A stretch of 60,493 nucleotides of DNA, filler included, from Callorhinchus milii (taxonomy: Eukaryota): NCBI RefSeq assembly GCF_018977255.1. It is 4 parts of 4 records of this genome, joined end to end, with 100 filler letters (N's around TTAATTAATTAA, not from the genome) between each part and the next. Parts side by side here need not be neighbours in the genome. Positions count along the whole stretch, not along the records: positions 24,798 to 40,680 come from NW_024706063.1; 3 more parts are not named here. One strand, given 5' to 3'. Of the stretch, positions 24,928 to 28,636 are shown piece by piece. Below the pieces are notes generated by a model. It saw only the letters and a list, made by a program, of their open reading frames with translations. It searched no databases and had not been told where the DNA came from. How positions within the stretch are numbered: the stretch's first letter is position 1; every line of letters starts with the position of its first letter. A program made the translations under genes and the position numbers.

Positions 24928-24966
24928 GGTTATTGTACGAGGCTTCCTATGATGTGTATCACTGTG
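24928..24966 (-). other. 23-bp-spacer RSS of supporting TCR-delta V 1
   Basis: CACAGTG-ATACACATCATAGGAAGCCTCGT(23)-ACAATAACC. Confidence 0.95.
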
Positions 24967-25268
24967 GTGCAGACTGAGTGCACAGTGATACATAGCGGAG
25001 TCTGTCAGCCGCAGGTCGGCGATGGTTAAAACGCTGATTTTCTTGGCAGTGTCAAGAGAAACAGAAATATGATCTCCAGTGGGGTTTCCTCCCTCTCCTG
25101 AGGGTTTTCTGTGGAGCAGGTATTTCAGTCCCTCGCCAGGGGACTGACGGTACCAGGAGACGCTGAAATCCTGTCCGCAGTATCCTGAATATTGGCAATG
25201 TAAATTTATCCTCTCATCAGCAACAGCAGTTTGTTCAGGCGGTGACTGGGAAACTGTATAATTGGATC
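24967..25268 (-). CDS. Supporting TCR-delta V segment 1 of NAR-TCR (leaderless, CDR1 Cys)
   Basis: Phase 1 acceptor cccgcag; SNYTVSQSPPEQ...LHCQYSGYCGQDFSVSWYRQ...LTIADLRLTDSAMYHCALSL; the nearest upstream exon-like element is a J donor, and I found no leader exon. Confidence 0.9.
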
Positions 25269-27077
25269 CTGCGGGACGCAAATTACAGTTTACTTAGAGT
25301 CATGGAATCATTGAATCTTTCAGCACAGGAAGAGGCCATTCAGCCCATTGTGTCTGAGAAAAGAGCTTTTAAAAATGCCAACCAATATAATCCCGCTCTC
25401 TCGCAAGAACACATAGAACTTTATAATTCCTTTTGATGCATGCAGCCAATTCCATACTGAAATTATCTTTCGAATCTGTTTCCACCACCCGTTGAGGCAG
25501 CACATTGCATTCAATAGGAATTTTCAGTGAAAATAAATCCTTCTGCTCTCCCCTCTTGTTCTTTTACCAATTATCATACATTTGGGTTCATTGGTGACTG
25601 AACCACTTGCCAGTGGAAGCATGTTATCCTTCTCTGCTCTATCAAAAACACTCACAGCTCTGAACACTTCATCTAAATCTCCGCTAAACCTTCGATGCTC
25701 TCAGGAGAAGATTGCCAGATTCTTCATACAAACTAATTCCCTCTGTCTTGGTATCATTTTGCTAAATGGCCTTTGCACCCTGTCCAAGGCCTTCACGCAT
25801 GTGTCCGTGAAAGGTACAAAGACAATTGTAGGGATTAATGTTACATCAACAGTGGAAGGAGCAATGGGATGTATTAAAATAGGCATTTCTTGTAGCTGAG
25901 CCATGTTTTATTGCAGACGCAAACCTTATTTCTATGACTGTATACCATTGATATGATCTCTCATAAATGAACCGTTTAATTGAGGTTTGTTTCTCTAATC
26001 TTATATTTGTTTGCTGTTGCGGTTTGTCGACATTGAGGCTTTGGGTGTCTGCGATCATGGGAATGTTTAGCAGAGAATCAGGTGTCAGGTTGTACCGTTA
26101 ACTTCAGCGCGTTTACAGTTGAAGCAAATGGAAAGCTTCTCTGCTGTAAATATCGTTACTTTAACATCGCTGCTGAGGAGATTTATTCTCTGGTTTGTTG
26201 CCAATATCAGTTTCCCTCTCAGTCTGTGGGCTGCTCATTGCAGTTTCAATTGNNNNNNNNNNNNNNNNNNNNNNNNNNNNNNNNNNNNNNNNNNNNNNNN
26301 NNNNNNNNNNNNNNNNNNNNNNNNNNNNNNNNNNNNNNNNNNNNNNNNNNNNNNNNNNNNNNNNNNNNNNNNNNNNNNNNNNNNNNNNNNNNNNNNNNNN
26401 NNNNNNNNNNNNNNNNNNNNNNNNNNNNNNNNNNNNNNNNNNNNNNNNNNNNNNNNNNNNNNNNNNNNNNNNNNNNNNNNNNNNNNNNNNNNNNNNNNNN
26501 NNNNNNNNNNNNNNNNNNNNNNNNNNNNNNNNNNNNNNNNNNNNNTTTCTTTAGGACTTTCTTTCTTTCGTTCTGTCCCTCTTTCTTTCTTTCTGTCCCT
26601 CTTTCTGTCTAATTCTTTTTTCATTCTTTCTTCAAATGTCATGGCTTACATTTTCGCAACATGCAGTGTTTTTGCAGGCTTGCATATTGACTTGCTTGTT
26701 GGTGTAGAATAAAGCAGAATTACCTGGGATCTCTCAGCGAATATGGAGAGAGGAAAGTGTGTTAACGTTTCAGGTGGATGAACTTGATTCAGAAATTTAG
26801 ACCCCACTTTTCGGGAGAACAGAGGAGGTTATTGATGATAATACATCATTTTACCCAGCTCAAGTACAAATTCATTACCCAATTAATATCAATTTACTCT
26901 GGTCATGTTCCTTTGGAACTACTGTGCAATCCAAATCAGTGACTTTCAAAACATGGAAATAAAAGTTGGTCATTTGAGAAACAAACCTTGATGTAGTATT
27001 CGGTTAGAATAATGTTTTTTGACAAACTCACGTGAATAAACTTTTATGTTAATTCGTTAGAAATGTTTCGCACTTAC

Positions 27078-27133
27078 TTTTCGTTACAGTTACTTTGGTT
27101 CCTGATCCATCTTCTGTATATTCCTCATAATAA
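27078..27133 (-). CDS. NAR-type J segment (YYEEYTEDGSGTKVTVTK), phase 1 donor
   Basis: Followed by gtaagt; the GxGTxVTV motif has D instead of W/F at the position before it, as in IgNAR J; preceded by a 23-RSS. Confidence 0.9.
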
Positions 27134-27172
27134 CACATTGACACAGCTCTCATTCAACAAGGTGCAAAAACT
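27134..27172 (-). other. 23-bp-spacer RSS 5' of the NAR J
   Basis: AGTTTTTGC-ACCTTGTTGAATGAGAGCTGTGT(23)-CAATGTG. Confidence 0.88.
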
Positions 27173-27486
27173 GTTCCATCGAGTCATGGTTTAATCCTGG
27201 CACCAAAACAAGCAAATGCAGACAAATTGTTAATAAATTCCTATACTTATACCACAGTCCCATTTCTATAATATTCGTTTGTCCAAATCATGCTTATTTT
27301 CAGTAAGTTTTCCACATAAACACAGTCAAAGCGCAAAGACCGAAGAACATATTTCTGCAAATAATTCTACAAAATATGTGGAAATAATTAATATTGAAAG
27401 CTAACTTTCGATACTTTCTGGAGCACAAAACAGGACAATGTTAGCGATGATCACGTCTCATGTATTTCCGTAAAAATTAGCAGTTC

Positions 27487-27557
27487 GGTAATTGTGCTGA
27501 TGTTTTCCAATGTGGCTTCCCCAGTCAAGCACAATGTTTAATAAGAACACAAAAACA
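27487..27557 (-). other. D segment CTTGACTGGGGAAGC (27515-27529) flanked by two 12-bp-spacer RSS
   Basis: TGTTTTTGT-GTTCTTATTAAA(12)-CATTGTG [D] CACATTG-GAAAACATCAGC(12)-ACAATTACC; D reads LDWGS or LTGE, third frame has a stop. Confidence 0.92.
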
Positions 27558-27881
27558 CAGGTTTGCAAAACAATTCAAATGATTTCGGCTATTTATAAAT
27601 GATCAATTAATCACATAACGTGTAACATTCTTTTGAATATTTTCTCAGTAAATTTGCATGCCGTCTGTCCCTTGCAATAATTTATAAGGTATATGAATCC
27701 AAACAACGTAGTAACTTCAGATTGATACACACTCACTTTTCCTAAGTATTCATAACTGACAGTCGCTGCTTAAAGGAAGTATTCTTAAACATAGCTGCAC
27801 ATCACACACGAATGAGGAACACGCACTGAACTCATCGGCAATTTCACATTCTCTGTGTTTTTCCTGTGAGTTGGTGACGGG

Positions 27882-27919
27882 GCTTTTTGTACTGTTGGAA
27901 GCCCAGATACGGCATTGTG
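27882..27919 (-). other. 22-bp-spacer (23-class) RSS of the NAR-type V
   Basis: CACAATG-CCGTATCTGGGCTTCCAACAGT(22)-ACAAAAAGC. Confidence 0.88.
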
Positions 27920-28205
27920 TTACTCCAGTCATATCGAGCTCTACAGTAATAATCAGCGCTGTCTTCAACTTGCAAGTCATTGATTTCCAGAGAAGAGGAC
28001 CACGATCCCATGTCTGTCTTCACAACAAACCGTCCTTCACGAGGAATGGGCTTCCAATTTCTTTCATTTGGAAACCGCCTATAAAACTCCATACTTTTGA
28101 ATTTGCTTTGAAAGCTTGCTGAGAAGACGCAGTTGATGGTTAGAGACTCGCATTCTTCTCTTCTAATAGAGGATGGTGTCTGTGTTACTGAGGCGCTGAA
28201 AACAT
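27920..28205 (-). CDS. IgNAR-like V segment (NAR-TCR membrane-distal V)
   Basis: SVTQTPSSIRREECESLTINCVFS...FYRR...IPREGRFVVKTD...SSSLEINDLQVEDSADYYCRARYDWS: VNAR hallmarks (ESLTINC, short FR2/CDR2 region, GRF/GRY, L-INDL-VEDS); acceptor tttctcag. Confidence 0.9.
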
Positions 28206-28593
28206 CTGAGAAATTATGCACAATATTACATCAGTTTAACAGATTTTCAACGTTGACCACTGCTATTACAATTCCAGTGCAACTTTTGGCTTTATCTCCC
28301 TTGATATCAGTTGATATAATATACTCAGGATTATGTAGTATCATTATTATATTAATTAATTAATATGATTATAATATATAATGATACTAAAGTAAAATAA
28401 TTGCCTGCCGCGTTTCGCCCATCAAAATACAAAGTTATTTCAGCATAAAATTATTATGTGAAGCGATTTGAGACGTCCCATCCACAACATAACGCTATAC
28501 ATCAATTACAAGGATTATTTGTACAGTATAGTTACAGTACTGATGACATTCACTGGTGCTGTGAAGTGCTGTGTTGTGGAAACCACCACTTAC

Positions 28594-28636
28594 ATTGTAA
28601 GAAGAGGAAGGAGATGGAGACACAGAGGAGAGACAT
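28594..28636 (-). CDS. Leader exon of the NAR-type V (MSLLCVSISFLFLQ)
   Basis: ATG...CAA T|gtaagt; phase 1 matches the V exon; hydrophobic peptide. Confidence 0.88.

Follow-up and report, generated by a model that had tools for sequence, protein, structure and literature searches.

A probable germline NAR-TCR cassette among elephant shark (Callorhinchus milii) T-cell receptor V segments

Introduction

Which antigen receptor is encoded where an antibody-like V-D-J set lies upstream of a second, leaderless V segment of T-cell receptor (TCR) type? The question is raised by a window of 60,493 nucleotides (nt) from the elephant shark Callorhinchus milii (the whole stretch of DNA analyzed, four joined parts of assembly GCF_018977255.1 with filler between them). 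The piece examined comprises positions 24,798-40,680 (NW_024706063.1; 15.9 kb), with the minus strand read over 24798-28900. From the sequence alone, this region had been read as a complete NAR-TCR cassette, that is, a new antigen receptor (NAR)-type V, D, and J spliced onto a separately rearranging TCR V.

The class itself, as that sequence-only reading acknowledged, is already known. NAR-TcR was first described in nurse shark (Criscitiello, Saltis and Flajnik 2006, PNAS 103:5036) and is summarized in sections of later papers, including PMC1845163 and PMC12227049. The relevant parts of two genome papers report that the elephant shark has NAR-TCR, in 2007 (PMC1845163) and again with the 2014 Nature genome (PMC3964593). 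In this study, the cassette at 28636-24928 was found to be, very probably, an unrearranged germline NAR-TCR gene within an array of TCR V segments. It is a copy of a published gene family and shows no departure from the known system and no new principle; its value is at the level of annotation. NAR-TCR nevertheless offers a vivid case of antibody and TCR parts combined in one chain.

Results and Discussion

Organization of the NAR-type V, D, and J segments

All elements placed by the sequence-only reading, from the leader to the recombination signal sequence (RSS) of the second V, were reproduced at the same coordinates on the minus strand. The leader exon (28594..28636) starts with ATG, encodes MSLLCVSISFLFLQ plus 1 nt, and ends at T|GTAAGT in phase 1; the leader string MSLL.VSISFLFLQ also opens the database protein P0005. 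A 388-nt intron (28206..28593) separates the leader from the NAR-type V exon (V1; 27920..28205), which is entered at ctcag|AT, matches Pfam V-set, and reads in frame with the leader (...QYVFSASVTQTPSSIRREECESLTINCVFSASFQSKFKSMEFYRRFPNERNWKPIPREGRFVVKTDMGSWSSSLEINDLQVEDSADYYCRARYDWS). An alternative V acceptor 10 nt downstream was rejected, as its reading hits a stop. V1 carries a Cys in the a-b loop (RREEC-ESLTINC), an F replacing the WYRK Trp (EFYRRF), and YYC; the a-b loop Cys and column F37 are both invariant across the NAR V alignment (A1).

The V1 exon is followed by an RSS with a 22-bp spacer (27882..27919; CACAATG, spacer, ACAAAAAGC). A D segment of 15 nt (27515..27529; CTTGACTGGGGAAGC) lies between a 5' RSS (27530..27557; TGTTTTTGT, 12-bp spacer, CATTGTG) and a 3' RSS (27487..27514; CACATTG, 12-bp spacer, ACAATTACC). 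This D is single, and a relaxed scan found no second D between V and J. The J segment (27078..27133), preceded by its own RSS (27134..27172; AGTTTTTGC, 23-bp spacer, CAATGTG), encodes YYEEYTEDGSGTKVTVTK plus 1 nt (A) and ends at the phase 1 donor A|GTAAGT. RSS pairing is governed by the 12/23 rule, under which the V (22/23) cannot pair with the J (23); the single 12/12 D is therefore obligatory. Such a 23/12-12/23 layout is that of shark immunoglobulin (Ig) heavy-chain clusters, unlike that of mammalian TCR delta.

With one fixed RSS definition used throughout, nine RSS-like sites were observed in the 15.9-kb piece, compared to 0.49 expected and a maximum of 4 in 500 simulations. All nine are correctly oriented and adjoin the coding end of a V, D, or J segment. 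The Ig octamer ATGCAAAT at 27659-27652, in the V-D interval, was not significant (2 matches in the window versus 1.0 expected). A scan for bacterial-type promoters and terminators upstream of the leader returned nothing, this type of scan not being applicable to Callorhinchus milii.

The supporting V and the J-to-V junction

Downstream of the J, an intron of 1,809 nt as assembled (25269..27077), which contains a gap (26253-26545) and a (CTTT)n tract (26557-26632), leads to a leaderless supporting V exon of TCR-delta type (V2; 24967..25268). V2 is entered in phase 1 at cccgcag|GA, matches Pfam V-set, and contains a Cys in complementarity-determining region 1 (CDR1; YSGYCGQ), WYRQ, and YHC. Its RSS (24928..24966) consists of CACAGTG, a 23-bp spacer, and ACAATAACC. 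The CDR1 motif YSG(F/L/I)C is found in V2 paralogues and shark orthologues.

The J was claimed to join V2 in frame, and this held. The A of the J and the GA of V2 form AGA (Arg), giving a predicted join ...GTKVTVTK-R-SNYTVSQ..., which continues with SNYTVSQSPPEQ... to ...YHCALSLH with no stop (nucleotide form, ...ACTGTAACGAAAA|GATCCAATTATACAG...). Two-V database proteins span the whole conceptual leader-V-J-V2 product, namely, P0005 (junction ...TVTK|RKSYTVSQSPPEQ...), white shark LOC121270138 (...EDGSGTVLTVTA|DSSSLVSRSP...), and one horn shark protein. As the same junction recurs in P0005, P0008, P0009, and white shark genomic DNA, the proposed J|V2 splice junction is conserved.

Identity of the two V domains

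In searches of solved structures, V1 matched shark VNAR domains best (~1e-15, 55-60 bits in one stretch), and individual Ig heavy-chain (VH) or light-chain (VL) V domains scored only 12-17 bits. A maximum-likelihood tree, a check that the sequence-only reading had suggested, took in NAR-TCR V, IgNAR V, VH, V-kappa, supporting Vs, and the conventional Vs of the piece. V1 was placed within the NAR-TCR V clade (95/90), whose sister group was IgNAR V (86/88), and it was separate from conventional TCR V, V-kappa, and VH (the VH clade itself, 98/96). When V2 and the two conventional Vs were compared with solved structures, multi-V constructs (single-chain Fv fragments and diabodies) dominated the matches, and TCR was not separated from Ig for V2; therefore, the tree was used. 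There, V2 fell within the supporting-V clade (97/95), where the second Vs of the two-V proteins of white shark and horn shark also lie, and the sister group of this clade was formed by the piece's conventional Vs (87/85).

In the protein search, one match was 98% identical, to a C. milii fragment, and all named matches of at least 64% identity were from C. milii; V1 is ~40-45% identical to elasmobranch NAR-TCR Vs. The tree path length between paralogues was 0.24 for the supporting V versus 0.9 for the NAR V. The supporting V thus varies far less among paralogues, which is consistent with a structural role.

The section of PMC1845163 on these genes (Venkatesh 2007) describes NAR-TcRV as having a leader and an a-b loop Cys and as lacking the WYRK Trp, and the associated delta V as leaderless with a CDR1 Cys. 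All four hallmarks of that paper are present here: EEC before ESLTINC, EFYRRF, a leaderless V2, and YSGYCGQ. The NAR V has its own leader exon (28636-28594) in frame with the V and its own D and J, with RSSs that allow V-D-J joining (22-RSS V, 12-D-12, 23-J), and the supporting V has an RSS of its own (CACAGTG-23-ACAATAACC) for a second rearrangement. The VH-derived outer V of TCR-mu is not matched, V1 being separate from the VH clade. Together, the best matches to VNAR, the clade placement, the four hallmarks, and the occurrence of the J|V2 junction elsewhere bear out the NAR-TCR identity that had been proposed.

Alternative explanations

Several features weigh against this identification. 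The J has the motif DGSGT in place of the canonical FGXG, although this is conserved across NAR-family Js, a DG(S/T/A)GT motif being common to the white shark NAR-TCR J, C. milii paralogues, and one dogfish VNAR. The V spacer has 22 bp in place of 23 bp, although four elasmobranch loci conserve this length. Of the five heptamers, four depart from CACAGTG at positions 5 and 6. No D-delta, J-delta, or C exon was found within the 15.9-kb piece, and the delta assignment therefore rests on homology and the literature. The description of the cassette as complete accordingly holds for the NAR V-D-J plus the supporting V and fails for D-delta, J-delta, and C-delta, which are outside the piece. Lastly, the J-to-V2 intron contains a gap, and the sequence around the supporting V is 94% identical between the paralogous cassettes.

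Imperfect heptamers, membership in a multi-copy family, and a neighboring V pseudogene (TGA at 36757-36755) could all be expected if the cassette were a decayed, non-expressed copy of a NAR-TCR gene, which we consider unlikely. No stop interrupts either V exon, the leader, or the J, and the canonical Cys and YxC are all present, as is the Trp in V2. Each of the five RSSs has retained an A-rich nonamer and the essential CAC, and both splice pairs are consensus-like and in phase. The deviations in spacer length (22 bp) and J motif (DGSGT) are common to orthologous loci.

The near-identity of the paralogues by the supporting V means that the assembler might have joined the V-D-J and the supporting V of two different cassettes across the gap, supporting-V regions 94% identical over 465 bp being a typical cause of mis-scaffolding. 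Such a mis-join is improbable, as a single continuous paralogous intron runs colinear with both gap flanks and the order, strand, and distance agree with those in white shark and horn shark. The gap (26253-26545) is the sole run of N's in the cassette region and lies wholly within the J-to-V2 intron (27077-25269), touching no exon; therefore, no exon or reading frame spans it. A phase 1 donor and a phase 1 acceptor are compatible at any gap length. Both flanks align, on the same strand, with the paralogous intron at 40507-38312 (26983-26911 with 40507-40435, 26655-26546 with 39399-39165, 26243-25483 with 39090-38372, and 25315-24851 with 38360-37901, the last 94% identical). The gap is adjoined by the (CTTT)n microsatellite, and microsatellites are a common cause of assembly breaks. 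Colinearity, microsatellite, and shark gene order support but do not prove the physical continuity of the intron. Even after a mis-join, the reading would still be that of a NAR J with a leaderless delta V downstream of it.

An IgNAR-type cluster, that is, an antibody gene and not a TCR gene, would account for the homology of V1 to VNAR domains and for the Ig heavy-chain type of RSS layout, but it is effectively refuted by the single D (IgNAR has three Ds and Ig constant exons), by the V exon rather than a constant exon after the J, and by a V1 that falls in the NAR-TCR clade with the NAR-TCR-specific a-b Cys and without the Trp kept in the two IgNAR Vs compared. Moreover, the relevant part of the elephant shark genome paper states that no IgNAR was found there (PMC3964593). 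The elephant shark, with NAR-TCR but without IgNAR, bears on a possible TCR origin of the single-domain V, as raised in that part of the same paper.

Proposed rearrangement and product

As an unrearranged germline NAR-TCR gene, the cassette would be expected to undergo two recombination events. In a developing T cell, RAG would join the NAR-type V to the D, and the D to the J, inside a mini-cluster of 1.1 kb. The supporting V, 1.8 kb downstream, would independently join a D-delta/J-delta near C-delta, outside the piece, via its own 23-RSS. A single transcript could then be spliced from the leader to the first VDJ (phase 1), from the J donor to the V2 acceptor (phase 1), and from the second VDJ to C-delta. 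The predicted product is a TCR-delta chain with two V domains, of which the outer NAR V would bind antigen unpaired, as a single domain, in line with the literature model (PMC3457774; PMC6795676). The a-b loop Cys of the NAR V probably bonds with the CDR1 Cys of the supporting V; a figure legend in PMC1845163 says that the two extra cysteines are thought to bridge the domains. We infer both rearrangements, transcription, C-delta use, and the disulfide from the literature. From the intact frames, RSSs, and splice sites, we infer that the cassette may encode a functional receptor.

Comparison with known systems

As summarized in later papers, the nurse shark NAR-TcR likewise places a NAR-type V on a supporting TCR-delta V within a delta chain that rearranges doubly, with one V(D)J event for each V. 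It differs in coming from an elasmobranch, whereas the cassette described here is holocephalan. The elephant shark NAR-TcRV and associated TcR-delta V of Venkatesh 2007/2014 are, by best matches, from the same species, and, with the four hallmarks given in the 2007 paper, the copy in this window is a family member. In the 2007 section, however, the delta Vs are only "putative associated," whereas here V, D, J, intron, and supporting V lie on one stretch with all RSSs.

The white shark (L001) and horn shark (L002) loci share the 22-bp-spacer V, the 12-D-12 and 23-J arrangement, the phase 1 donor, and the leaderless phase 1 V with its CDR1 Cys and 23-RSS. Their J-to-V introns (2.7 and about 5.5 kb, respectively) are longer than the one in the elephant shark. 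In addition, the white shark locus has a VDJ exon joined in the germline, whereas the elephant shark window is without one.

The V domain of IgNAR is homologous to V1 (60 bits), and the J motifs are similar (YDGAGTVLTVN in VNAR 2C02), but in the IgNAR Vs compared, the Trp is retained and the a-b Cys is absent. TCR-mu of marsupials and monotremes is also a three-domain TCR chain with an antibody-like, somatically diversified outer V on a supporting V (PMC3457774). Its origin is convergent, however, and its outer V is VH related, in contrast to V1, which is outside the VH clade.

Conservation of layout and spacing

In white shark L001, an unrearranged NAR-TCR V has an RSS with a 22-bp spacer, the D is 15 nt long and has 12/12 RSSs, the J has a 23-RSS and a phase 1 GTAAGT donor, and the leaderless V, entered in phase 1 at ccctacag|AT, has a 23-RSS. 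The horn shark and bamboo shark loci have the same 22-bp V spacer and matching D and J RSS types, and the gene order of J followed by supporting V is likewise seen in white shark and horn shark. From the V heptamer to the D 3' heptamer, the distance is 405 nt in this window, 406 nt in both white shark and horn shark, and 396 and 397 nt in bamboo shark. The D-to-J distance is 381 nt in this window, 380 nt in white shark, 405 nt in horn shark, 377 nt in bamboo shark, and 385 nt in a short contig (L005). Where it can be delimited, the D is single and 15 to 16 nt long in C. milii, white shark, and horn shark. The intervening V-D and D-J DNA was 62 to 63% identical to that of white shark, at the edge of shuffled sequences, with no real conservation.

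It is possible, albeit doubtful, that the NAR-TCR mini-cluster is physically "frozen," the 22-bp spacer, the single D (15 to 16 nt where it can be delimited), the V-to-D distance of 396 to 406 nt, and the D-to-J distance of 377 to 405 nt being shared by a holocephalan and four elasmobranch loci. If true, the frozen spacing would suggest that V(D)J joining in cis over short distances is mechanically constrained, for instance, by spacing at the nucleosome scale. The Ig-type 23/12-12/23 layout would then also be older than the holocephalan-elasmobranch split and would lie inside a TCR locus of a species without IgNAR.

Some copies outside the window are already joined. In white shark L001, 11445-11792 (GCA_017639515.1 CM029991.1) is a germline-joined NAR-TCR V-D-J exon that runs from the acceptor through CDR3 to the J and its GTAAGT donor. 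It lies 2.7 kb upstream of the supporting V, and another 4 kb upstream is an unrearranged V/D/J set. In the same locus, the RSS block that follows the supporting V occurs twice (14826 and 14888). In contig L005 (281-1003), a V is already fused to a D with a 12-RSS directly after it, and the unjoined J lies 385 nt away. Three C. milii models (P0003, P0004, and P0031) have near-identical CDR3-plus-J strings, YYCRARFDANRCAVGKRE(K/N)TKDGTGTAV(I/T)VTKSK, which hints at germline-joined NAR-TCR copies in C. milii as well.

Surroundings of the cassette

The minus strand carries all V segments of the piece. Read 5' to 3', the series opens with part of an upstream NAR-TCR cassette, namely, its intron and supporting V (40680-38012). 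Next come a V pseudogene (36873-36567) whose WYRQ Trp codon is replaced by TGA (36757-36755) and two conventional Vs, the first with its leader at 34393-34348 and V at 33718-33406 and the second with its leader at about 32221-32167 and V at 31599-31288, and then the NAR-TCR cassette at 28636-24928. The upstream supporting V (38012..38311) has the same acceptor and CDR1 Cys, with an RSS of CACAGTG-23-ACAATAACC at 38011-37973. Its J-to-V intron (38312..40680) is truncated by the edge of the piece, the J lying just beyond 40680. The two supporting Vs are 95% identical in protein and 94% identical in DNA over 465 bp, extending 110 bp past the RSS, which suggests that the supporting-V unit was recently duplicated or homogenized.

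Between the two cassettes lie the two conventional V genes (33367-34393 and 31249-32221), which are of TCR alpha/delta type and apparently intact, with the leaders MRLFAVCLVLGSFMS and M(ATM)RLFMDYLILLSFMS and a phase 1 intron and 23-RSS in each. Their best single-stretch structure matches were TCR alpha and V-delta-1 chains; therefore, judged by its sequence, the piece is part of a TCR V array with interspersed NAR-TCR cassettes. NAR-TCR V has been placed in the TCR alpha/delta region (PMC12227049; PMC3149040), and the array found here fits this placement. Two C. milii models, P0019 and P0002, are related to the pseudogene region (36528-36873), which is open apart from the TGA and has a weakened RSS (CACAGTA-23-GCATAAACC).

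Gene models and repeats

The view that annotation based on open reading frames or gene models serves such genes poorly was borne out, public models of the family being fragmentary or chimeric. An RSS-level map of the cassette and its neighbors thus helps to annotate the locus. Among these models, P0002 combines a conventional V front with a NAR V back, P0005 has its leader spliced into mid-V, and P0009 reads through into an endonuclease domain like that of a long interspersed nuclear element; P0001 and P0019 are also fragmentary or chimeric. Exact-sequence look-ups of the C. milii models P0005 and P0003 matched no record.

The intron of the upstream cassette contains a 46-bp tandem repeat in 9 copies (39551-39958), a long (TTTC)n tract (39146-39301), and a GC-rich interspersed repeat (40270-39970, minus strand). 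The tail of the interspersed repeat (cagcgccttggga...gacgtgaaagg) occurs again at 24798-24847, with a looser variant near 32530-32570. An Rfam tRNA match of 40 bits was detected at 35092-35154 (plus strand). Because similar tRNA-like stretches recur in the piece, near 33000-33060 and 37470-37540, this match is probably the head of a tRNA-derived short interspersed nuclear element and not a tRNA gene.

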